DNA from: Amoebophrya sp. A120
Lineage: Eukaryota; Protista; Dinoflagellata
NCBI GenBank assembly: GCA_905178155.1
Contig: CAJINV010000004.1
Span: 5,392,258-5,456,257, forward strand
Reading direction: 5' to 3'
Length of the DNA: 64,000 bases
The translations under genes were made by a program, and so were the position numbers. A model generated the notes under the pieces. The model saw only the letters and a list, made by a program, of their open reading frames with translations. It had not been told where the DNA came from and did not search any database. This document shows positions 25,995 to 41,991 of this stretch, piece by piece (position 1 is the first letter of the stretch; every line of letters starts with the position of its first letter).

Positions 25995-27313
25995 TGCTTG
26001 CGGTTTATAGTCTCGAAAGCGGTCGTGTCAACGGGTTCTAACAATGACGCGCATTCATATTATTATCAATATTCGAAAAACGCGCTAGCCAGCCGACAAA
26101 GTCGACTATGGCAGCGATTGCACAGGTCTCACGGTCTGTCTTTCTCTGCGGGCTCACTTTTCAACTCCTTTCGCCGGGCTCTCTTGTGGCAACAAACTAT
26201 AGGTAGGCTTTTTTACTTCAAATAAAAAGGGCTAGGCTTAACGAAAAAGATCTGTTGATTGACTCTGTGTATAGAAAGGCAAAAAAAGGTTTTTGGCTAA
26301 GTGGCGGGGATCACTATTTTGCTTTCTTATCATGATAAAACTCTGTGCAGTCTGTAAGTAGAAACAAGGCTATCTACAAGATCCGCAATCTACTAACGAA
26401 CCAGTTTTCGCAACTACTTGCGCACGAGGTAAACGTAAAAGCGACAAAAAAAAAAGGGCAAGCTTGCAATTAGTTTGACCTTTATAGTACGTCTCAAATC
26501 TAAGAAAAGTGCATCTGCCTTCATTATAAAAGCTTCGTTCAACATTTTAAACCCGTGCCTCCGCGCCACCCGGAGCCCCCGGTTAAAAACTCCGTGTCTC
26601 CTCTGGTGAAACTTCGTTCGGAGAGCCCTCTGGTGAAACTTTCTGAGCGTTTGAGATCTTTACAGGACGCAACGCAGCCCTGAGCTTTCTACCTGTCACT
26701 CTGCCGCGGAGAGATGGAATTGAGCACGGGCTCCATCCCGGCCCTTGAGTGCAGACACTTCAGGCACTCCAAATGGCAGGCATCTTCAAAGCCTTCAACC
26801 AGAACTTTGTTTCTTCGAGCATCAATGTTTATCGATTTTTTTTTTACAAATTCGAACTCTCTACGGCCAAGCGAGAGTTGTTTGTTTGTTTGTTGAGGTT
26901 GGTCACATGGAACCGCTTGAAAGATGTTCTTTCTTCTCATGTGTCTAGCGCTACTTCAATAAAAAGGGACAACTTGGTGGAGCTGCTTTAGCTCCAACCT
27001 TAGAAAAACAAGACGGAACTGCTGCTGTAAACGAGAAAAAGCTGCTCTTTCTTATAAGAAATTCGAGACATGATTCAAAAATCTTTCATTTGATTTCACT
27101 TGCACAACATTGCTGTGCTTGCAACCAATTCTGTGTCCGTGAAATTACTCAGCTACTTCTTACTTATCGTAATGCGCGACAAACTCAGTCAAGCTCCCAC
27201 CTTGTCGTAAGCAAGAGTATGACTAAATTTCGCAAAGAATGTAAGTGTGTCCTCACTTTTTCCTCGAATGATCCGTGAAAATCACGACGGATTCCGTGAT
27301 TTGTAAATTAGAT

Positions 27314-27703
27314 TTACTGACAGTCCGGGGGCAATGGGGTCTTGTCGTAACAGAAGTAGTTGCGTTCCGCCGTCACCCCGAAGTTACAGCACGTCTGCAA
27401 CCAGGTTCCGTACGGGTCATTCAAAACGCCGAACGCAGCCGTCTGGACTTTGCAACTCAACTTGTAGTACAACTCCTGTGGTGCTCCCCTCCGTCCGCGA
27501 TCTTCTGGATTTTTCTTTTTCTGCTGGGTCGTTTTGGAAATTTTGCAGACGGTGTTCTCCATTTTCTCGGCAGCAACGACTACGGCAGATTCCCATCCAG
27601 GCGGCGGTGTGGAAGAAGTACTTGCGATGATATAAGTCCCCGCTGGTGCTGGATAGTTTTGCCAACCCGGCTGCACGGCGGACAAGAACGAGGATGCCTC
27701 GCC
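27314..27703 (-). CDS. 3' part of a small Cys-containing host ORF interrupted by the 14-kb element
   Basis: Joins in frame with 41755-41991 through direct repeat GGCGAG (..GSADG-GE-ASSFLSAV..CCNFG..PPDCQ*), about 206 aa. Confidence 0.5.
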   Translation of the reverse strand, partial: GEASSFLSAVQPGWQNYPAPAGTYIIASTSSTPPPGWESAVVVAAEKMENTVCKISKTTQQKKKNPEDRGRRGAPQELYYKLSCKVQTAAFGVLNDPYGTWLQTCCNFGVTAERNYFCYDKTPLPPDCQ

Positions 27704-27956
27704 CATGGACGTCTTCTTGGGGTCGCCGCTTCTGATGAGGATTAGCTTCCGGATTTCTTCCGGATTTCTTTGGAAAAAAATTTTTCGGGCTATTTGGCAG
27801 TTTACTGCTATACTTTTGGGTGTTCCGACTTTTGCTATTCACGTTCCCAGCGTCGGAAATCAGGTGTCAGATCGTTCGTAGCTCGATTCTCGTGCGAGAA
27901 CGGGCCTCGTCGAGTTTCGGCACCCCGATCCCCCCCTTTTAGGCCGCCCCCGTCTC

Positions 27957-28805
27957 GCTCGGCCATTTGGCCGAGCGGTTAAGGGGTGTAGGTGTTTCTT
28001 CCAGTCCCTTTCCACCCTTCGTGGGGCCTATCCCCTCGCCGATGCGATCCGATCACCCGTCGCGGCTTCGTTCGAACGTGCGAAGCCGTTTAGCCCCACT
28101 GGTAGTGCATCGAGATGCGATCGGCAGTCCCTTTTCACCCTTTTTGTGTTGTCTTCCGTCCCCGCAGCGATCCACGCAGTCGCAGCTACTATCGAAAACC
28201 GCCCGCACTACGTCTTGTCTTCTGCAAAGAGAGAAGACGTTGTTCCGGCCGTTTCTCAGGTGTTGCAGCACTCGCCCATTTGGGCGAGTTGGTAAGGGGC
28301 CGAGTTCGTTGATCCGGTCCCTTTTCACCCTTCACGGGGACCGAAGGTTCGAAGCCCAATGTTGGCTTTTTTTCTTTCGGTGCGGCTTGTGCGACTGAAA
28401 GGAAAAGCGCACTACTAGGACAAGTAGGGACGGAGGGGCGAAAGTGGATCGACCTCGAAGGCCGAAGTACTTTCACACGACGGCACTCGCCCATCTGGGC
28501 GAGTTGGTAGAGGGAGGGGATGCTATCCCCAGTCCCTTTTCACCCTTCACGGGGATCGAGGGATCGATACCCAGCATTGGCGTTTTTTCTTTCGGTACGA
28601 TTTGTGCGACCGGAAGGAAAAACGCACTACTACCACGAGGAGGGACGGAGAAGTGAAAGTAGACCAACCTCGAAGGCCGAACTACTTCCACGTAAAGACA
28701 CTCGCCCAACTGGGCGAGTTGGTACAGGGTGGAGATGCTATCTCCAGTCCCTTTTCACCCTTCGCGGGGATCCAGGGATCGATGCCCAGTGTTGGTGCTT
28801 TTGGA
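27957..28805 (+). repeat. 215-bp tandem repeat (copies at 28269 and 28484, truncated third at 28699, plus degenerate upstream copies)
   Basis: Repeated cactcgccca.ytgggcgagttggta ... gtcccttttcacccttc ... ttgg followed by T-runs; exact 215-bp period. Confidence 0.9.
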
Positions 28806-29347
28806 AAATGGAAGCGAAGAAGCAAGCCGTCGGGATTGAGAAAGAGAAGCCAAGATAGAAGCGAAAGAAAGAACTAGATACTGATCGTCGGTCTGATGCG
28901 AAAGCACCGCAAGAAACTGCTCCTCCTTGTTTTTTCTAAGTATCTGTGTTCGTTTTTTAGATGGGAAGCGAGAGAAGTCGAGTCACGGGCGACGGGGGGC
29001 ACGAAGTGAAGGTTTTTTTTGGTGAAGAGCGTGTTTTTTGTCCGGCCGGAAACAGAAGCCACCTAGCATCGATCGCCGAGTTTTTTGCCAGAGTCCCAAC
29101 ACCGAACAAGGCCTGCACGTTATGAAAACCCAGGTAAGATACAAATTTTGATCGTAGAGAGCCACCACCTATCTACAATACTCACATGTTTCATACGCGG
29201 GCGATCCCGCGTAGCAGTCCGTCCGCTCCCCAGTAACGCGATGCCTGTGTGGAACGGATAGCGGCAGGTGCGCATTCGTGCGACCTCGGAAAGCGGAACA
29301 ACTACTTCTTCTCGAGCAGAACAACTACTGCTACTTCGTCGCCCGCG

Positions 29348-31645
29348 ATGTCGAAAAAGCCGGTGGACCCCGCGAAGCTGGAGGAGCAAAAAGCGGAAGC
29401 GAGTCTGTTTTTCAACGCGACGGCGTTCCTGCACGCGCGGAAGCTGTGGAAATTCGGCTATCTACTTTGCGACTCCGCTTTTAACATCGCGCAGTCGTAC
29501 TTTGCGGATTGGAGTTACAAAATAGTACACTACAGGTGCGAAATAGATGGCACCACGCAACAAGCACTACTATTCGAGAATAGTACTCGCGGCCGCATCC
29601 GCGTGTACGCGCATATCATGGTGAGCTTCGTGTGCATCACCTTTGCCATGGGAGGAACAAATACGATGCTAGGACATGTTGCACTACCTTGTCACACCGT
29701 GTTGTTCCCATCATCGTCGGACTTTTCGAAGCAGAAGCGTGGTAGCTCGGGCTTCAGGGGGTGGAGCGAAGGATATGAGATTGCGGATTTGGTTTGGACG
29801 ATGAACAACCCCGCGATCTACTTCAGCGCCTTTCCGAAATCCACAATCAAAGTGTGGACCCCCGCGACCGATTCAGGAGGATCCACAATATCGACCCTTT
29901 TTTATTTAGGGTCGTTCTTCCTTGCGACGGAGGCCCTAAAAAATTGCGTGATGTGGACGGATCGCTGCAAGAACCATCAGGCCGCGCTCATCACCAAGAG
30001 CGTCGCGGAGACCTATTTGGCGATGTGCGGGCTTGATCCGATCGGGTGGCAAAAACGACTATTTTTACAAGTAAGATTTCAAGTAGCTTTGTACTTCGCC
30101 CCTTCTCGCACTTTTTTATCATGCAAAAAATGTCTGTTTTGTATTGCAAAATGTAACAACTCGCATCACAAATTACCAGGTAACCTCCGTGAAACTACTA
30201 CAAGAAAAAATCCACGCGCAACTGGACCACGTTGCCCGGTGGATAGGCGAGTGGGATCAGCAAACGCCGATGCCACGCGACGCGGCGCTGAACGGGTTTT
30301 TAGACCGTTGTCATTTTCCCGAGGACAAGAAGAAGTTCATCCGCAAGTGCTCGGCGAAAGCGCAAACACTGGTCGCACCACACCAATGCAGGCGCCAGTG
30401 TTTACGCAACCTACACTCCTGTTACCGGGGCTTTCGAGCCCCGGTATGGACCCGATGGCTCACAATCCAACAGGCTCTGGGCCAAATAGCGGTTTGTTTA
30501 GCGATATGAAAAGACAAAAATAACTAGCACAAAGCGCAGCCGGAAGCATGACACAAAGCAGGCAGATTGAGTTTTTACGCATGACAGATTACGATCGCAG
30601 TATTGGTAGCTATCTTCGTGCTTGCTTTGTGCTAGTTATTTTTGCATGTGCATACTCGTTCTTCATGGGGAGACTATTCTGTGGGTTAGGTCCCAGAGTG
30701 CAATTTGGAGCCGAACACGTGTTGGAGCATGGGTTCCAAATAAACATGCGTGGAGACACAGGAACAAACAATTCTAGCATGACAAACACGATATTGGGCG
30801 GCGTTTCTCATGTACAGCATCGCTACCCCTCGCATGATGACCACGAACTACAAATTCCGAATTTGTAATGCGTTTCTTCACCGCAGCCGAACTAACACAC
30901 TACAAACTCGAACAGGTCCGCAATTTGTGTTCATAGTTGTGAGCTGGTTCGTCATGGTGATCATCGGGCCCGTCGAACATTATAATGCTGCGATGTTGAA
31001 GGAGGACTTGAGGCAACGGACGAAGCTGGAGCTGCGAAAGCAATTTGATCAAGACGTCACGGAGGTCATTAACTACCTGTACAACAAGGAGAAAGCGCAC
31101 ACCGACCTGGCTTTTCTTCTCTGCGGCATCGGAATTGGGGCGGTGGCGTTTGACGAAAAACAGGAGCAGCTGGCACTTTTGAAAGTTGCGTTTCTTGGAT
31201 ACTGTGTCGCAATTTGTCATGCATTTTTTGCAATTTTTGCCATTGCAGCTTCAACATAAAAATTTATCAGATCGAGTTCTGCAGACTGAGCGCCCAGCTT
31301 TGCGTGTGGGTCAGCAGGTGCTTGCTACATTACCGCGATGGAGCAACTGATATGCACGAGAGGTGGTTGGACATGGCGAGTACCAACCTCGACAGCGCGA
31401 TAAATTTTTTGCAGAAGAAGAAGCACACTCCGTACCTGAGTGACGACCCCGGGTCGATTAGTCTACACACGGTTGCGCGGTGGTACAAGAACCTTCCGCC
31501 GCTGACAGCGAAGAATCAACTGAGTGAGCTGGTGGAGTACTTGAAGGGGCGGAATCGCACGACGCGGAATTGCGAAAAGCGGGCTGGGCGATTCAAGTAC
31601 CACACAAAAACTATGGACGGAAAGACCTCAACAATAGCCCAGTAG
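29348..31645 (+). CDS. hAT-like DDE transposase, spliced; central exons unresolved, possibly degenerate
   Basis: Motifs in hAT order: EIDGTT (D1), PATDSGG (D2, about 70 aa later if intron 29621-29734 is removed), RCKNH (CxxH), WTRWLT, TTRNCEK (E). Clear GT-AG intron 30071-30179. Confidence 0.7.
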
Positions 31646-31920
31646 TGCCAGTGCTACAGAAGCGCTTGCTTTCATGCTTTGCATCGTGTTTGTCATGCAT
31701 GAAATAATAACACTTCTTCGTCCTGTGCAGTGCTTCCCCCTTTCGAGGGGCACGGCGCCAAATCTGTCATGCATTTTTCACCCCTCTTTCGGGGGAAGAA
31801 AGACCAAATTTGTCATGCGTAATCGCGTCCCGTTCCGAACTCCGTTTATAAAATGAAAGCAAGCAGCAATAGCACCGAGTTCGCGGTGCTATTCCTCGTT
31901 TTTTTCGTGGTATAGGCGGA

Positions 31921-34494
31921 GTGAAAGGCGGAATGAAGAGTATTCCGGGCTCGGACTGCGCCCTTAACAGGGCGGACTTTCAGAACCACTCTACCACCGC
32001 GACAGAGGACCTGCAACAACATCAGCCTGCAGAGCCTGTGCTGCCTTCTGCAGAGCCGGCCCCGAAACGGGCGTATGCGGGTGTGCGAGCCATAGACGCC
32101 AAAAGGGCGGACCAGACGCACGAGCCCGGTTCTATGCCGTCGCAGAAGGACGTGCTGAAGAAGACCACCAGCAGAAACAAGTTACGCAATACAAATTTCC
32201 TGCTCATGTGCAAAATGCATGGCAAATCTAAAGCAAGTTTCAGCATGCCGCTTGTCATGCTGAATAGGGTCGGAGTACAAGTCTGTCATGCAGAAACCGA
32301 GTTCGTACTTGTGCGGGAAATTTCCCATGGATACAAGTGGAACGAAGACGATAAGCATGAGAAGCTGCGGCACCATTACATCGCGGCGGAAATGGACAAA
32401 GAAAAGCGGAAAGAAGAAATCCGGAAGATGTCGGAGGCCGAGATCGAAGAAGTGGACAAAGAAGAGAAGCGGCCGCTTATTATCTGTCAGCGGGAAAGCG
32501 GATTCTACCAGGCGGTGGAAGCGGACGTGACGAAGCGGCACCAGAGTGAAACCTTCGACGCAACCAAATGGCTTCCCGCCATGTGTAACCGGACGAACCA
32601 GCAGGTCGGGCAGGAAACGCCGCCGGAAATAACGGCCAAAGGACGGCCAAAGCCCGCAAGTGCAGTGCTATTTGCGCGGTATTTGCGGTCGCGGAGAGCG
32701 CGGGTGCGCGAGCTGCGGAAGGAACGCAAAGAAGCAGGTGTTGCGGAGGGCGAATTGAATGATCTGAAGCTTGCGGTGGAGGAAGATGACGATACGCAAG
32801 ACAAATTGTAGAACAGCCCTGCTTTTGCGTTCAGATTTTGTATTTGTGATTGCATGACACCCTGCGAAAGATACGCTTTTGCTTTTCGAGAACAACAGCA
32901 ACATAGCATGACAAGTTGGCACCAGATTTGTCCTCTTGGAAAACACGAGCACAGCGCTTCCGTGATAGCAGACTTGATCGTGCTGAAATACAAAAGCAGG
33001 GCGTTCTACAAGTTTGAACGGCATACGCGAAGATGAAGAGCCGGTGGAGGATGACGAAGATCCCAGCAACGACGCAGCGGCTCTCATCCCCGAGGAGGTG
33101 GCGCAAGGACGGGACGTCTGCGCCCTGTTCTCGCCGTTTGTGATCACCAGATTCCTGAATACCAAGACGAAGCAGTGGGTGCCGTTTCTAATCTCCGACT
33201 GCGTATTGACGCCCGCCAGCTTCAAGGCAATCAAGCTGCTCTACACGGGGAAACCGGAAGCGTGGCACAAAGCGACGCTCTACACATCCCACAAGGACTA
33301 CCTGTTCTCTGACAGCGAGGCTACCGACTACGACCTCGACACAATCTCCGAAATGTACACATTGGAGATAAAGGACGCGGATGATACAGGCCGTGTGCGC
33401 TTGTATTGCGGAAAGCAGGCGCAGCTGCTGAAGCCCGGTGGCCCGAAGGTGAAAGCGGGGAAGGTCGGTGGAGGAGAAGGTGATCAAGGAGGACTGGGCT
33501 TCTGCTACCAACGAGCAGAAGGCCGCACAGATGGATCAGCTACAGAAGTTTTTGCAGCCCGTTTCCGACGCTGCTTGTGCACCAAAGGCGAAGGACAAGA
33601 TTTTCGTGATCCAGGAGAGCAGAATGGTGGCGCTTCCGGTCCGCGCGGAGGAACTGGATCCGCAGGCAATCCGCGTCGAAAAGGAAACCCAATCTGGTAA
33701 AGCGACGCAAACACAGTCGAATCTGGAAACGCAGACGGGATCGCAGGCTACCGCGAAGTCGAGCGACGATCGAAATTTCCGGCAAGGAGTACAAGCTCCA
33801 CATCTCCGCGCGACAAGAAACCATCAATCAGTTGGAACCGATGAGAATTGATGGCTTCAAGATAAAGGAGGCAAGCTCCGTCTCCGACCGCAAAACCGAA
33901 GGGCGAGATAGCATCCGGCTGCAGATTTTCGCGTTGGAAAAGAAGTTGAAGCAGAAGCTGGCAAAGCAGATCTTGAACCCGAACACTACGCGGCACTGCC
34001 AGTCGAAGGGGCAGACCTTGGGGCGCGGTATGCGATTCGACGAAGCCGACGGTCCCCGCTGGACTGACGCGCGTTTGTCGGTGTGGGGTGTACGCGCCCG
34101 TTTTATCGCCGAAAAAGCTGGCGACAACACCGACTACGAGCGGAAATGCAATGATGAAGACGTCGAAATCCTCAAGCAGCAGTACAGCCTGTACATGAAT
34201 GACGTGCACCAATGGGCCCAGACCCGCGCCGGTGGCTGCACAACGAAACTGAAGGAGTTGGAATACGAAATGGAGATTGACAAGCGCACGCCGCAGTGCC
34301 TCGATCCGCGGAATACTACCAGCGAGTGGCTTGACTTCCGTGACGCCACGGAAGGGGAGAAGGACATCAGTACCAAGTTGGTCGAGCGGCAGAAGGAGAA
34401 GAACTCCAAGAAGAATAAAGGCGGCTTTCTGCCCACGGTTCCGGAAGTGGAGTACGAAGCTGCTTTGGAGGTCCATGTGCCGGCGATTGCGTGA
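31921..34494 (+). pseudogene. Charged uncharacterised spliced gene (or transposase extension) inside the giant element, with two apparent frameshifts
   Basis: Consecutive coding-like ORFs 31921-32811, 33014-33700, 33468-33851 and 33832-34494; frame changes near 33465 and 33765; intron-like tgtcatg-rich interruptions at ~32180-32315 and ~32808-33000. Confidence 0.55.
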
Positions 34495-34589
34495 TGGAGC
34501 GACGGCGTACCTGATAGAGTTTTATTTGTAAATTATGAACAAGAATCTCAACTCTCTCTCGTCTCCGTTTTTTCTCCTGAAAAAGGAGA

Positions 34590-34890
34590 TCATTTCTGAG
34601 ACCAAAAAATGTCCTCTGAATAACTTTTGAATATCTTTTGATTTTTCAGTTTCGAAACAGCAAAGTGAAAAAGATTATCTTTTTTTGAGCTCTCTGAGTA
34701 TCTTTTTCGGAGAGCTCTGTTTATCTTTAGGCCGATGGTATACTCGGATTTCCAGCACCTTCTGAATATCTTTTTCAGAGGCTTCTGAATAACTTTCAAA
34801 GATATGTAAATGGTGCTTCACTACCTCCGAACCTACTCACTTTTTGACCTCTCTGAATATCTTTTTGGAGTCAAAAAATGTCTCGCTTTG
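34590..34890. repeat. AT-rich dispersed motif cluster (CTCTGAATA[T/A]CTTTT)
   Basis: Five to six variants, e.g. near 34614, 34694, 34761, 34783 and 34851. Confidence 0.65.
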
Positions 34891-36007
34891 GATGATCGTT
34901 TCTTCTAGAAAAATCTAAGTTAAAAGAAGCTCTCTCAGACAACGCAACTCTTCTTGCAAAAGGTAGATTAGGAACTAGCAAAATACCTTCCTGTAGTAGT
35001 GTAGTACTGCCAGCGCGCTTGCGTGATACCAGCGGAGCCGACGACCATGGACTACCTGGAATGGACCTTTGACCATGGAAACCTTCAACGCGCACGGGTA
35101 CTACACCACCTACTGCGCCTCTGCTGTTACCGTGGGCCTCGTGGACTTTGGTGCGTACTTGACGTTGGTGACCATAGCCGCGAACTTGCCGTTGCTGGTG
35201 TTGCGCGGCGTGCTGGCATAGTTATTAATTGTAGAATAAATAGAATTTACAACAAGACTGCGAAAGCATTATAGTAGGTCGAAAGTAACATAAGAACAAG
35301 TAAAAAAGTACAACACACGCATGTAGTAGAACATACACAACAGACATTGGGAAAGCATACACGGCAAAGACCGTCCTTGACTGATATAGAGCAGAAAACA
35401 GCCTGCAGTCGCATACAGATTTGCTTTGTACAGGAATAGTTTCCGGGTGTGAGCACGCAATATGCATGACAAACACCACGAAGAGAATTAGTGTCTCATC
35501 ATCGCGACGCAGGAATAGGGAACATAAGCACAAAAGTCCACACGTAGAATGGAAAAACAACATCTCTGTACCTCTGGAGTCTTGTGCTCCGCTGCTGGTC
35601 TGAATGCCATCTTTTCCGTTCATTTCGTATCAACACTGCTAAGGACGAGCGACCTGATGTTAGTTATGGCTACTTTGCTTTGATATCACATCTCGCAAGC
35701 ACTGAGCTGGATCTCAATTGATAGTTCTGAAAAAAAAAGCACGAAAGCGCATGTGTAACAGTGTCGGTTCTTTGTTTATGAATTTGAGATGAGGAGGCGC
35801 TACTGAAACTACAGCAATTCTTCTCTTTCCACGCACCAATCGGTCCACAAGAAATCGCGTTTTTTTTTGCCTAGAATAACGATGACCTTAAACGGGCAGT
35901 TTTCACTTTGCACTTCTAATCAAAACCGTAGGGAGAAAAACTTCAACAGTTTTTGCGTGAGGAAACTCAACCTTCTCTGAGTTCCTCTTCCTTCTGAAAA
36001 AGCAATA

Positions 36008-39000
36008 ATGGCACTGCGTCGTCAGCCGACCGACCAAGTCGCCCAGGAGTTTGTCCAACGGGCGCAGATGGACGTATAATTTTTGGAACATGATGCGTTT
36101 TTCTGATGCAGAATTGATGTTGCTTTGGAAACAGATGACTTATGGACTCTTCAGAAATAAACTGAATCTACATCAAATACAGCCCGACGCTACCCTCCTG
36201 GCCGCGATTGAACACGTCTATCGTCAAGAAGGCCGCGCGCGTACTCGGTTGACTTCTCGTGTGCAGTTTTTGAGCCGCCTCGACAACGAGCAGATCAACT
36301 CGCAGCTGTCGTGTCCGTTTGAGCAAACATATGCATTACAAATTACCCTTGCGCTTCACTCTTTGCATGATGATAGCGTCGTGATAAAAAACAGCTGGTC
36401 ATGCGTGATTGTCATGCGTTACGAGCATAGTTTACACCTTTGGCGAGGCTGTGGCGCAGCGCAAGTTTCCCTTGCATACTTTCATTGCCCGCCACATGCT
36501 CCGCCTGCCCGGACCGGTGAAGCTGTGCTTGCACTCGCGCACGGACTACCTGCACCGCGAAATCATGACCATGACCACCCGCGATTTTAACGGGATCACT
36601 CCCGTCCAGGAGTTACGTGTGGCCGTATTAATGCATGAGTTATTTGCTTCAAATTTGCGGCGATAAGAGCGCGTTTTTCTGCGCATGCAAAAAGATAGAT
36701 CTGTCATGCAAAAAGCACCACTCGACGTGATGAATTCGTGAAGTGTTATCGACATGAACAAAAAACCACTACAGAGCCACCTTGTGGGTCGTTATCAATC
36801 CATAAGTGATGAGCAGTCGGCGGCGCGTGCTCTCGCTTCCTGCGCGAAGTTAATGCCCCTGCTCCGCTTCGAGGCCAGCAAGGTGCAGCTGGAGATGGCT
36901 GCCGTCCACGCGCTGTGTCAGGGTTCCTTGTATCGTCGCGGGAACACCCAGCAGACCCGCACCCTGTCCGACTTTTCTGCCTGGTATCAGTACCTGTTTT
37001 GCAAAGAGGGACTTTTGATTTCTAGGTGAGCAACAGATGCTCCTGCATGACATGCAACGCCAAAACTCCTTTTAGAAATGGAAATTTGTAACGCAAAAAG
37101 TGATACCGTAACAGGGCCCAGGGTCGCGGTCGCGCCTACTGCGCCGGTGCTACTCCGTTGACCGAGATCAAGGAGAACTGCGAGTTGATCCAGGGTGCCT
37201 TGTTGAGCAAGCAGGTCCGCCAGCTGGAGACCATCGCTGTGAACGACGTGCTGGGAGCCGGTGATCCGGATCAGCCCCAGACGGTCCAGGAGCTGTTTTT
37301 CGAGAAGATCTCCGAGGTGCAGTATAGTGAGTGCTTTTTCTAGAAAAAAGTATCAGGCTTCTCATGCTTTCCGTAAGAGGATCACGCCAGTCATAGGAGG
37401 AGAGAGAGATGCTTCTTTTTGAGACAGATTTGCACGCTTTCACGTACCTTTGCCGCGTATAATTCTATCTTTATCATTTCAAAACTCCATACCTTCAGGT
37501 GCTAGAGAAGGCTGCCACGGATGAGTTGTTGATCGTCGTGAAGAATGAGATCAAGGAGTTGCTCCGTACTGGCAACCCCACTGCCACGGACATGTATGTG
37601 AGTGAGAACATAAGAAGGTCACTTGAGATATGATGCTCGTGCTTGATAACCTCGTGTCATGGTGGCCATGCGAAGACATGCGTGGAATTTTGAGCTTTGT
37701 CATGCAGAAACAGAATATCTTAGAGCTCGGACAGCTGTATCGGTATTTCGAACAAAAAAGCTCGCCAGACATGCACGAAAATCGAGCATCATAGCCCATC
37801 CCGCCTTCTCCACTTTTGCTTGCATAATCTCCAGTCGGTTGAGCGTGCGTTCTCCACGTCCCCGTGCCCGGAGATGTTGTACTGGAACGCTGCTGCCGCC
37901 GCGCACTCGTACATGGGCGATACGGATATCGATGACCTGGTATGAAAGTGCTTCTTTTTGAGTTGTAGAATCAGCTACGCCAAAGCGTCTTCATTACGAC
38001 CTATATTCGCACGCTGCGTTGCTGTTCAAAAATCCGGAGCAGTCGTTGTTTCTTTACGCATGCAGGACGACAATTTCAAAACTTAAAAACAACTATAAAT
38101 AACAACAGCGCCAGATGTGGTTTCGTACGTACTTGACCAACATCATCAACTGGATGGGCCGCGACTCCGGTCCGCACCCGGTCTTGCAGTGCATGGACAC
38201 CTTGATCACCCGCGTTAAGGAGGGGTTTCCGAAATGCCAGAAGCTTCCCCAGAACACCTTCTTGGAGATGACCGGCCGCTTTCGGAGCCAGCTCCTCGCC
38301 ATGGACCAGAACCGTATTGATGGAGAATTTTCCACGTTGAAGGGGCAGTTGACCGCCATGACGACTACCTGCGAGAACGCCCTTCCGTTCGACCAGCGCG
38401 ATGGGATTCTGGAGATGTCCGGCGTCAGCGACTTCTTCGTGAACTTCCCGGTCCCGGATCGCAGCCCGGTGAAGCCGTTGTGCGACTTGTGTGTCATGAT
38501 CTGCAACGTCTTCGCCAACGGGCCGGAGAACCTGAACATCCAGAACATCGCCCGCGATGCTCTGACGATGAAGAACGAGTACGATCAGAAGTTCGTTGGG
38601 GCGTTTCCCTCCATGATCGACGCCGCGCAGGGATTGCTCACGGCTTTCGTGAAGATGATGCAGTCCACGGAGGAGGGGGCGCTCCGGACGCACCTTTCCA
38701 ACGGTACAATAAGACTAAGAGCGAAAAGATGACGTTGCGAGGGAGGAGTGTTGATTTTTGACGCGAGCGCTACAACCACTCAGAGGCGCGTATGAAAATC
38801 GGTCCCGTGCATACAAATTTCAATTTCAACTACACAAAACTACTCACAGGTCAGTACGACCAGGCCATGGCGGAGCTCAACCGCATGGAGCTCCCCATGG
38901 CGTTCTTGGACATGGACGTCCGGCAGCGTCTTTACAAAGAGATCGAGAGGGAGCGTCCCGTTGCCGGTGCCGCCAAAGCTGCCGGTGGTCCCGCGGGGAA

Positions 39001-39145
39001 CGGTGAACCCGCGCCCCAACGACGACGCATCAGCATCAACTTGCACCAGGCCGTGCCGCAGCAGCCCGCTGCCCAGATTGGTGTGATCCCGAATCCGGAT
39101 GATGATCCCACGCTCAATGCGGACACTGCGGAAGTCGACGTGTGA
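36008..39145 (+). CDS. Multi-exon uncharacterised cargo protein of the giant element
   Basis: GC-rich exons alternate with ~100-200-bp GT...AG introns: MALRRQPTDQVAQEFVQRAQMD / PDATLLAAIEHVY.. / ..MWFRTYLTNII..THLSNG / QYDQAMAELNRM..AEVDV*. Confidence 0.6.
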
Positions 39146-40509
39146 TTTTGCTATTCAGAATTAGAAATAGCACTGTCGTCAAAGTAGAATTGATAACCAC
39201 GCGCACCGCGCTGGCACCTGTATGATGATGATTACACCTCGGCACTCTTTTCCTTTGACTTTCGACTATACTATACCTGAGAAGGGGCAGTGGTAAATCT
39301 GCCATGCTTAGTGACCTTCTTCTGTTTCTACAACAAATGCACAATTCCACTTTGGCCATCAGTTTTCGATCATAGAGCTTGTTGTATGATGTAACAGCAC
39401 AAGTGATTTAAGCCCCTACACTTTGCGCACGGGGTGCAATTTAGTAGGAGTTACTAGCTTGAGTGAAAAACCGTTGGGCTCTAGTGACAAACATACTCCA
39501 GCACTCACATCGTGGTGGAGGATACAATTTCTACACAGGGGGTCGAGAATCTAATTGTAAAAATTATTATTATTGATTTTTTTAGTGTGGAGGCGTGAGT
39601 TTCTGATGACTAGTTCTGCACTGTACATAGAGTTTTGCAATTCGGAATTGGTGTAAAGCCAGAGTCTGAATTGTCAAATTTCACTTTGGGGTTGGAAAAG
39701 AAAAATACAAACGCGATACACATTCTAGGTAGTAGAACTTTTATTGTTCGCGTTACACATGGCACAAGCAGCACAGGTCGGTGGAAGAATTCGGTGAAAG
39801 AACTTGGAAACTCGGTCGAAAGACGCGCGCACATGAAGGCTTGGTAGTGATGGAGTCGGAGACTCGGTGTGAATGTGTGTTTGTATGCCAGAGCTGGCAA
39901 GCGTCGTCGGTGTGCCCGTAGCTGCGATAGTGAAAAGGCTCGCGGTGATGGAAAAGGGGACTCGCGAATAGAACAAAAGAGCCGCTAGTTCTCACATCGT
40001 ACACACACTCTTCTATGCTAATCGTCCTTCATAGTAGCAACTCAAACCAGAACACTCTTAGACCAGTTTCGCAATCTCAGCCGCTTCTCAAAAAAAAACG
40101 ATCATCTTGTATACGTAACTTCACAACTTCGCAAAATCTCGCTTCTACTTCACATCTATCACAAGAAAAAACACAATCTTCACATCTACAGCGTACATGC
40201 TCGCGTCATACATAGCTTTACACTTTTTACATTCAGACTTGTAGCCACACATGCACACTTGCTGATACAAAATGGAAGCCGCCTCCCCGGGCGGGATATA
40301 AGTTCGGGCGTATTGCAAAACTGGCAAGAGATCGCGCGCAAAGAAAGAAGTTCTTACTCATGCATAGGTGCGTAGTCCGTTCATACACATACACGGCTGC
40401 GCCGTCCGATCGATCTGATTATGCTTTTCGTGTGGACATACAAACACACTGCAGGAGCGACTAGTACTACACAGCTACCAAAACACGCTTAACGCAGCTC
40501 CCGCTGAGC

Positions 40510-41200
40510 TTTGCGATTGTGGCGAAGGGCGATTGTGGCGAAGGGCGACTGTGGACCGCCCGGTCGACGGGCAATTGTGGATGTGGCGAAGGGCGACTGT
40601 GGATGTGGCGAAGGGCTGTTTGGAAGAAGGGCGATTGTGGATGTGGCGAAGGGCGATCGTGGATCCGCCGCCGACAGCTGCGATTGTGGACGCGACAGTG
40701 GCCACTGCGGGTGGAGCGTGGAATGCGAGAAGCGGGTGGAGCGGCCGACGCGAAAATGTGGATGCGACAGTGGCCACTGCGGGTGGAGCCGTGGATGCGA
40801 GACGGCGGTGGCGCGGCGACTGCGAAATGTGGATGCGGCAGTGGCCACTGCGGGTGGCGCGGTGGACGCGAGACGGTGGTGACACGGCGGCTGCGAAATG
40901 CGGATGCGGCAGTGGCCACTGCGGGTGGAGCGGTGGACGCGCGATGCGGGTGGAAGTGCGGCTGCGAAATGTGGATGCGGCAGTGGCCACTGCCGGTGGA
41001 GCGGTGGACGCGAGATGCGGGTGGAGCGGCCGCTGCGAAATGTGGAAGCGGCAGTGGCCACTGCGGGTGGAGCGGTGGATGCGAGACGAGTGTGGAGCAG
41101 CGGCTGCGAAAAGTGGATGCTGCAGTGGCCACTGCGGCTGTCGCGGTGGATGCGACATGCGGGCGGAACGACGGCTGCGGAATGTGGACTGCGAATGGAG
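40510..41200. repeat. Minisatellite: ~16-22-bp units (gcgattgtgg(atgtgg)cgaagg) followed by 7 copies of a ~71-bp unit
   Basis: gtggccactgc at 40698, 40770, 40841, 40912, 40983, 41054 and 41125. Confidence 0.9.
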
Positions 41201-41754
41201 CCTCCAGCTGTAGCTCTGCTACCAACGCGTGGAGGCGTGCTGCTGACGGGTGGATGTGGATTGCGGATACCAGCGTGCTGGCGACGCGCAATCGCAACTG
41301 CGGACGGAGCGGAGACGGGACGCGGAAAATACGGCGTTCACTGCGACGACAGCGGGGAGCGGAACTGCAGACACGACTCAAACATATGCGGAATCTAGTT
41401 TACAGTGAGTATTGTGAAGCTTGCATGAGGTGGTGGCTCTCTCTGATCAAAAAAAAAAGCAGGTGGCGAACACAAATCCGAACGGCGACATTTACGGGCG
41501 ACGACCATCATCGCGTTGTGCTTTTTCTAATCACAAAAAGCTCAAATTGCGTGCGTAGACTTGTAGTCTGCGGCGATGCGGGCATGATGCCTAAACAAGA
41601 ACACCTTCGCGAGCCGGCGATCCCCACCTGATGTTGGTTGAGGTGGGAGGCCGGCCAGTTTGGTGCTCGCGAAAAAAATACTTTCCAAAGAAATCCGGAA
41701 GAAATCCGAAATCCGGGGCCCATCAGAGCGCGGCGGCGCCAAGTCTTCCACTTT

Positions 41755-41991
41755 CTCGCCACCATCCGCACTGCCGTCCGGCTGCAGGGTCTGGGAGGAT
41801 TTACCCTGGGAGGATTTACCCTTTCCGCTCCCGCGGAAGTTCTTCGCGTCGTCCTCGTAGGCAGTCACCTCCCCCATTTTGCCCAGCGATTGCACCGCTG
41901 CCAGGGTGGTAACAACATGGCCACGCTTACCGCACCGGTTCGCGGGTTTGCTGCGCATTTTCGTGCCGGAGGAAGCTGCGACGAGAGTCAT
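41755..41991 (-). CDS. 5' part of the host ORF interrupted by the giant element
   Basis: MTLVAASS..VVTTLAAVQSLG..NFRGSG..GSADGGE; in frame with 27314-27697. Confidence 0.45.

Follow-up and report, generated by a model that had tools for sequence, protein, structure and literature searches.

A 64,000-nt stretch of the Amoebophrya sp. A120 genome (contig CAJINV010000004.1, positions 5,392,258 to 5,456,257; hereafter the window) was analysed to follow up an earlier note, made from the sequence alone, that had proposed a giant transposon inside a minus-strand gene. The element is a DNA transposon of 14,028 bp at window positions 27716-41743, lying antisense to its host, a well-expressed orphan gene from whose transcript 13,994 of the 14,028 nt are taken out, as shown by one RNA-like data set and the gene model. 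As a whole explanation, we consider it likely that the element has been recently mobile, that it is one of a low-copy family of approximately 14-kb cut-and-paste DNA transposons in Amoebophrya, that it encodes its own DDE (Asp-Asp-Glu) transposase and that it is taken out of host RNA as an intron.

Boundaries and copies of the element

The bounds were fixed by comparison with a second copy, on contig C7, and with a diverged relative on C11. The genome searched was an assembly of 115,520,608 bases, with a G+C content of approximately 50% in the window and 51.2% in the published A120 assembly (PMC7789003). Matching the ends against the genome, a check suggested in the earlier note, was productive: a search with the left end found the C7 copy (C7:31555-45602), which is colinear with the window element from first to last base and sits between flanks unrelated to those of the window. 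BLAST matches of 99.1% and 98.7% identity extended from 27715 to 41743, with no match beyond. The two copies differ by 140 substitutions and 38 gap columns, and their outermost 80-95 nt or so are identical at each end. The window flanks occur once only, and neither an empty site nor a paralogue of them was found in the genome. The C11 relative is 74% identical at the end and 35-60% identical in its proteins; in a translated comparison, the blocks conserved with it formed one ordered plus-strand series from 29351 to 38711. The end-to-end colinearity with C7 and the gene order kept in C11 bear out the proposal of one unusually large, multi-gene DNA transposon.

When the genome was searched with the protein encoded by exon 1 of gene 1 (the probable transposase gene, described below), 17 matches were obtained, corresponding to approximately 11 loci, mostly in near-identical pairs. 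Two exons of the gene 2 region recur downstream of exon 1, at matching distance, in six to eight family loci. Since the inner genes are conserved across the family, they belong to the family itself and were not captured as cargo; the description of the element as cargo-carrying was dropped.

The termini of the window element read CTTGG...CCAAG. The left terminal inverted repeat (TIR; 27716-27790) starts CTTGGGGTCGCCGC, where homology with C7 begins, and pairs with the right TIR (41665-41743), which ends ...GGCGGCGCCAAG, where homology with C7 stops. The inverted ends reported at a distance of 14 kb, sharing an exact core of 27 bp, were confirmed, with arms at 27731-27785 and 41673-41727 (55 nt, 80% complementary); the outer limits first given for the element (27698/27704-41760) were wrong, the C7 copy setting them at 27716-41743. 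The target-site duplication is TCTT, located at 27712-27715 on the left and, by junction comparison with C7, at 41744-41747 directly after the right end. Perfect 4-bp duplications were found in all three elements (TCTT in the window, AGAT in C7 and GACT in C11, the last having the ends CTTGAGG.../...CTCAAA), so that the figure of 4 bp is secure and replaces the 8-bp duplication with two mismatches and symmetric ends that had been suggested. The element thus shows inverted ends, a target-site duplication and copies at unrelated sites, as expected of a class II TIR transposon. Genome-wide, a degenerate pattern of the ends had 8 matches in 115 Mb, the 171-bp left end matched known copies only, and no small derivatives with the same ends, of the type of miniature inverted-repeat transposable elements, were found.

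The hexamer CTCGCC was considered as the duplication and rejected, as the comparison of copies places it 9-11 bp outside the true ends. CTCGCC or its complement GGCGAG occurs within approximately 12 bp of the insertion site in all three elements (27698-27703 and 41755-41760 in the window; the left flanks of C7 and C11). The hexamer is half of the subterminal palindrome of the element, and its occurrence near insertion sites could reflect target preference or chance.

Probable removal from the host transcript

The host gene is read from the minus strand and corresponds to the annotated A120 protein P0017 (227 aa). Its upstream coding exon (41724-41991, minus strand) carries the annotated start, MTLVAASS..., and its downstream coding exon (27314-27729, minus strand; stop codon at 27314-27316) matches P0017 at 100% over 137 aa and is covered by a contig of run X1. 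The stretch missing from the host mRNA is a non-canonical AU...AA intron of 13,994 nt (27730-41723, minus-strand sense). Record 2 of the X1 contigs (1,229 nt, depth 114) matches 26886-27729, after which it reads CAGAGCGCGGCGGCGCCAAGTCTTCCACTT, which is the window from 41724 onward; in the region 26800-32700, the X1 depth was 114 on the flank versus 0-4 inside the element. P0017 spans the joint and reads ...EDLAPPRSGGDPKKTSMGEASS, and its segment ...GGEKVEDLAPPRSGGDPKKTSMGEASSF... is the exact translation across 41724|27729. Contig and protein therefore share one joint, in agreement with the earlier suggestion that the element might be removed as a 14-kb intron; an RNA joint does exist, but at 41724|27729 and not at 41761|27697, where the earlier note had placed it. 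The two sides of the joint have no letters in common, no microhomology and no shared 31-mer. As no letters are common to both sides, the position of the joint is unambiguous and it is not an assembler jump through the inverted repeat.

The X1 run looks like RNA, both from its contrast in coverage and from further loose ends at 26883-26923 that resemble splice joints. At this place three RNA-like contigs break or branch, at 26883, 26886 and 26923, a pattern that points to a further intron, or to joints used alternatively, in the 3' portion of this transcript. The element thus behaves as introners do, being situated in a transcribed gene and missing from its mature RNA, the joint having been read from RNA-like data and P0017. 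The published RNA-based gene model already holds a 13,994-nt intron here; its reading as a transposon was not met in the literature examined.

The mRNA retains 20 nt of the right end (41724-41743), 14 nt of the left end (27716-27729) and both copies of the duplication. The retained sequence amounts to 38 nt more than the empty site, and it is translated as ...LAPPRSGGDPK... inside a continuous open reading frame (ORF) of 227 codons. The joining of the flanks into one minus-strand ORF accordingly stands for the spliced RNA and P0017, with a length of 227 aa and not 206 aa. Likewise, the claim that the element splits a host ORF in frame holds for the spliced RNA with its 38 nt, but not for the duplication-precise empty site, where translation from the annotated upstream frame would pass into a different one. 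The codon score was 0.246 (coding-like) for the upstream ORF and 0.103 (middling) for the downstream annotated frame, against reference means of 0.171 for coding sequence and -0.021 for open wrong frames. Either the ATG at 27706 (9 nt below the insertion) was the start of the ancestral protein, which would make the upstream ORF a by-product, or the insertion created the present frame. No orthologue of the host protein was found in the protein search. When the C7 copy was cut at the equivalent sites, a minus-strand open frame of 226 codons was modelled, with the remnant in the same frame (LAPPRSGGDPK); the C7 flanks showed no clear coding frame by codon score, and the modelled 226-codon frame is not claimed as a gene.

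In predicted folding, the two ends as RNA pair over approximately 75 bp (duplex energy, -99 kcal/mol): the first 14 nt form an outer helix, which a small internal loop separates from a long inner helix. The 3' cut falls at the internal loop (A27730|G27729) and the 5' cut 4 bp into the inner helix (G41724|A41723), so that both are inside the stem, 14 nt and 20 nt from the respective element ends, and, along the helix, the 3' cut is displaced outward from the 5' cut by 5 nt. C27734 is the pairing partner of the last exon base, G41724, and the intron ends in a 5-nt 3' tail, CAGAA, of which CAGA pairs with the last four bases of the exon, UCUG.

In the mechanism proposed here, the gene 1 transposase would bind the CTTGG... 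ends and probably also the subterminal palindromes, insertion would take place with a 4-bp staggered cut, and the second conserved gene would travel with gene 1 in the element. In the transcript, the inverted ends may pair into the stem of approximately 75 bp and thereby bring the cut sites together, as proposed for small hairpin introners; cuts within the stem would then leave the 38 nt of ends and duplication in the mRNA, to be read in the continuous ORF. With pairing as the presumed mechanism, the case shows that the unusual splicing of Amoebophrya is able to take out 14 kb with nothing more than paired transposon ends.

A second case bearing on the cuts is a hairpin introner nested in gene 1 (30505-30654, plus strand; 150 nt, TAT...ATA; arms of 31 nt at 30505-30535 and 30624-30654). 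The C11 relative reads straight through at this position and provides a natural empty site. For a colinear protein (CLAIFMGRLF versus CLGCFMARLF in C11), the loss of 155 nt, the element plus 5, is needed. It is conceivable, though on balance we doubt it, that the RNA cuts are set by helix geometry, with a fixed 5-nt stagger, and not by sequence or by the target-site duplication; the idea draws on these two cases, one of them deduced from homology. If it were true generally, the machinery that removes hairpin elements in Amoebophrya would work by measuring a constant stagger along an RNA helix. Such a splicing mode would differ from GT-AG recognition, and the giant element would be a natural experiment that parts the stagger from the duplication. 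Cuts inside the repeat show the position of the machinery on the helix unambiguously, and small introners mask this position behind direct repeats.

Genes and repeats carried by the element

Gene 1 (29348-34494, plus strand) encodes a probable DDE transposase of approximately 1,250 aa in approximately 10 exons and was delimited by homology with the C11 relative and with proteins of Amoebophrya A25. Its approximate exons are 29348-30070, 30153-30502, 30660-30763, 30885-31184 and 31253-31624 (exons 1-5), and 31921-32190, 32380-32790, 33032-33457, 33471-33725 and 33769-34491 (exons 6-10), all on the plus strand; the exon borders of both genes were derived from homology and not from RNA. The A25 protein P0006 (1,115 aa) aligns in order to 29897-34431, and P0004 (1,247 aa) and P0007 (1,299 aa) align at both ends of this span. 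This colinear alignment shows that the 'transposase' at 29.3-31.6 kb and the 'unknown genes' at 31.9-34.5 kb form one gene. The earlier division of the interior into a spliced transposase and two or more unknown plus-strand genes thus keeps its spliced plus-strand gene, while the stretch at 31.9-34.5 kb becomes exons of gene 1; a separate conserved gene region does exist, at 36.0-39.1 kb.

With a profile of exon 1 built from ten family members, a search of 1.84 billion proteins recovered 16, from Amoebophrya A25, AT5 and a few further assemblies, none of which carries a protein name. Homologue searches with the 424-aa ORF and with the family alignment gave nothing further. No Pfam match was obtained for the long plus-strand ORFs of the window or for the relatives (four full-length and one N-terminally truncated), even at E ≤ 10, the only signals being sub-threshold, chance-level matches to AgrB and T3SS_SCTL; gene 1 had no PDB sequence match in profile and single-ORF searches. 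In the ESM Atlas, exon 1 gave no match, and a search with residues 60-680 of P0004 returned only unnamed eukaryotic clusters and weak hAT-derived leads.

Conserved motifs of gene 1 are E.DG(T/S)T, TDSGGST, W..RC..HQ.A, P.W.RWLTF and E.K(V/I)G..K. An AlphaFold2 model of exon 1 built from a 24-row alignment had a pLDDT (predicted local distance difference test) of 79.7 and a pTM (predicted template modelling score) of 0.70; a 10-row alignment had given a pLDDT of 38. The fold of this confident model is RNase H-like. D66 is on its first strand and D174 closes a later one, both being conserved across the family and at the strand positions expected of the acidic triad, and the next helix opens with C206xxH209. 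Foldseek placed the Hermes hAT transposase first (E 1.5e-3, probability 0.95, template modelling (TM) score 0.29) and the RNase H domains of Prp8 next; Hermes was absent from the 50 best matches by Z. Transposases can be grouped by a CxxH motif and a long insertion before the final acidic residue, and the order of motifs in gene 1 fits DDE transposases of this type. Gene 1 is therefore predicted to be a probable DDE transposase with an RNase H fold. No stop codon or frameshift was found in the homology-defined exons of either copy, window or C7. Of the 45 exon differences between them, 38 change an amino acid, as expected of copies drifting since insertion. A near-perfect hairpin between two gene 1 exons (31839-31922; 39-nt arms, 74% complementary, 6-nt loop) may be another tiny hairpin intron.

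The conserved gene 2 region (36009-39142, plus strand) was recognized from the C11 relative and the family loci, with exon blocks, from C11 conservation, at 36180-36299, 36523-36630, 36772-36990, 37107-37253, 37808-37894 and 38103-38729. It had no Pfam match and no trusted PDB sequence match. At 36009-36587 there was a marginal PDB match to a WD-repeat dynein assembly factor (E 0.0024, 116 aa), with no support in Pfam and probably due to chance. A tyrosine recombinase (Phage_integrase, PF00589) was considered as a candidate enzyme and rejected, since none of its 17 genome matches falls in this element or its family loci.

Different tandem arrays lie near each end, as had been noted. The left subterminal array (27958-28789) contains four copies of the 18-bp palindrome CTCGSCCANNTGGSCGAG (at 27958, 28271, 28486 and 28701) within 215-bp tandem repeats, of which 2.4 units occupy 28268-28789. 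The four matches compare with 0.07 expected, there are no others in the 64 kb, and the first copy is at offset 243 in the window element and the C11 relative alike; the palindromes are putative protein-binding sites. The right subterminal array (40677-41193) consists of 7.3 units of a 71-bp tandem repeat and is also present in the C7 copy. A further inverted pair (29146-29170/41428-41452; 25 nt, 92% complementary) encloses all of the core that carries the genes; it lies 1.4 kb in from the left end and 0.3 kb in from the right, and was not detected in the C11 relative.

Alternative readings and relation to known systems

Several points weigh against a self-mobilizing transposon removed from RNA. 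The joint was seen in RNA-like data and the gene model alone, so that a DNA deletion allele in the RNA culture is an alternative; X1 is a run of contigs labelled RNA by guess, all depth evidence comes from this one run, and X1 and the published annotation may share the same RNA data. The number 38 is not a multiple of 3, and the present ORF cannot be a simple ancestral ORF. On the enzyme, the third catalytic residue (the E of CEKRAGRFK in exon 5, E599 of P0004) was proposed from alignment only, and the structure model covers exon 1, a part of the catalytic domain. Internal deletions of DNA transposons are common, and an allele in which the element was lost or internally deleted in the RNA culture, leaving 14 + 20 nt of its ends, would produce the same joint, which is known from RNA-like data, the RNA-like and DNA-like runs coming from different samples and studies. 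We consider such an allele distinctly improbable. The assembly contains the full insertion only, with flanks that occur once, low-depth contigs from the element interior are present in the same run X1, and the joint lacks microhomology; moreover, the published gene model derives from this assembly and from introns with RNA support, and the hairpin elements that are removed from RNA in A120 number in the tens of thousands (PMC7789003). A composite region made up of independent elements, such as an inner one bounded by 29146-29170/41428-41452 within an outer shell, is suggested by this second significant inverted pair and by the presence of at least one small introner nested in gene 1. It is very improbable, given that C7 is colinear throughout, that C11 keeps the order ends, palindromes, gene 1, gene 2 without the inner pair, and that genome searches found no separate copies of an inner or outer part.

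Two further alternatives concern the enzyme, and we regard each as unlikely. Gene 1 may encode an RNase H-fold protein of other function (a nuclease or an RNA-processing factor), the element being moved in trans by another enzyme. The fold matches are indeed generic, with Prp8 RNase H, Pelota and a terminase nuclease scoring as well as transposases, and there is no sequence-level link to any transposase. Against this, gene 1 was found only inside these TIR elements and co-varies with them over approximately 11 loci and in A25 and AT5, and no gene of the family is larger or better conserved; the searches revealed no other recombinase, there being no tyrosine recombinase match in the family loci and no Pfam match in the scanned plus-strand ORFs. 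Alternatively, the element may truly belong to the hAT superfamily, its duplication being of atypical length. The motif order in hAT transposases is D, D, CxxH, W, E, and the order D...D...CxxH...W...E here recalls it; Hermes is the best Foldseek match, and weak Atlas look-alikes (score 0.80-0.81) carry hAT-derived Pfam families. Such Atlas scores, however, are within the range reached by shuffled proteins a third of the time. The Foldseek check of the internal proteins proposed earlier, run on exon 1, did put Hermes on top, but with a TM score of 0.29 and outside the top 50 by Z, and the exon 1 features (RNase H-like fold, D66, D174, C206xxH209) are common to several superfamilies. In hAT, the catalytic E sits in the C-terminal domain, and here approximately 650 aa follow the proposed catalytic E. 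The 8-bp duplication of hAT was not seen in any of the three elements, each of which has a perfect 4 bp, and neither PF05699 (Dimer_Tnp_hAT) nor BED nor any other hAT Pfam domain matched the window ORFs or the five relatives, even at E ≤ 10. Because of the duplication length and the missing hAT domains, a strict hAT assignment fails, and the element is hAT-like, as the earlier note had called it, in a loose sense only.

Compared with hAT elements such as Hermes and Ac, the element is alike in being a TIR cut-and-paste element with a predicted RNase H-like core and the motifs D, D, CxxH, a conserved W and E in this order. It differs in its 4-bp duplication in place of 8 bp, in having neither the C-terminal dimerization domain nor the BED finger, in a protein approximately twice as long, in a total length three to five times greater and in its second conserved gene. 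Short duplications (2-4 bp) are characteristic of CACTA/CMC, Kolobok and Academ elements, with which the comparison was made by description. CACTA elements, with their large size, several genes and subterminal repeat arrays, resemble the present element by description. Unlike them, it has termini that are not CACTA-like and no Pfam match to CACTA transposase families, and unlike in Kolobok its duplications are not TTAA.

In A120, a parasitic dinoflagellate, non-canonical introns make up two thirds of the total, and those that are hairpin-ended, transposon-like introner elements number in the tens of thousands (PMC7789003). The intron ends of these A120 elements carry an inverted repeat of 8-20 nt with the motif TAT...AAA, and a direct repeat of 3-5 nt spans the exon/intron borders; hairpin-ended elements are spliced at variable, non-GT-AG sites (PMC7789003). 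The giant element shares with them the organism, end repeats that can pair as RNA, splice sites that are non-GT-AG and variable relative to the hairpin, and a duplication of the same order (3-5 nt in introners, mostly 4 in A120). It is set apart by its length (14 kb versus 40-1000 nt) and its genes, by ends of CTTGG versus TAT...AAA, with an end motif that is rare in the genome (8 pattern matches), and by cuts 14 and 20 nt inside the repeat that leave 38 nt in the mRNA. With splice sites within the inverted repeat, no direct repeat at the joint and CTTGG ends, it falls outside the introner definition of Farhat et al. These authors found no transposase in A120 and argued against transposase-mediated spread of introners (Farhat et al. 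2021, PMC7789003). A TIR family that looks intact and was recently mobile, with a probable DDE transposase unrecognized by the domain library, is now described in A120. The 'no transposase in A120' argument needs revisiting, although the CTTGG ends differ from those of the abundant introners and nothing links the gene 1 enzyme to their spread.

A close published parallel is found in Gozashti et al. 2025, who describe autonomous intron-generating TIR elements in A120, including a 'family 38' with Copia/Gypsy integrase-like ORFs (PMC12130899). Those elements are like the present one in having TIRs, ORFs and near-identical copies and in being removed from A120 host transcripts. The present element differs from 'family 38' as described in that no Copia/Gypsy integrase similarity was found here with Pfam. 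Transposon-made introns are thus already known in Amoebophrya, and the kind of thing is known; new here are a family of approximately 14 kb with an orphan RNase H-fold protein of approximately 1,250 aa, a 4-bp duplication and two conserved genes, and, in addition, the corrected anatomy of the element and the cut sites inside its repeat.

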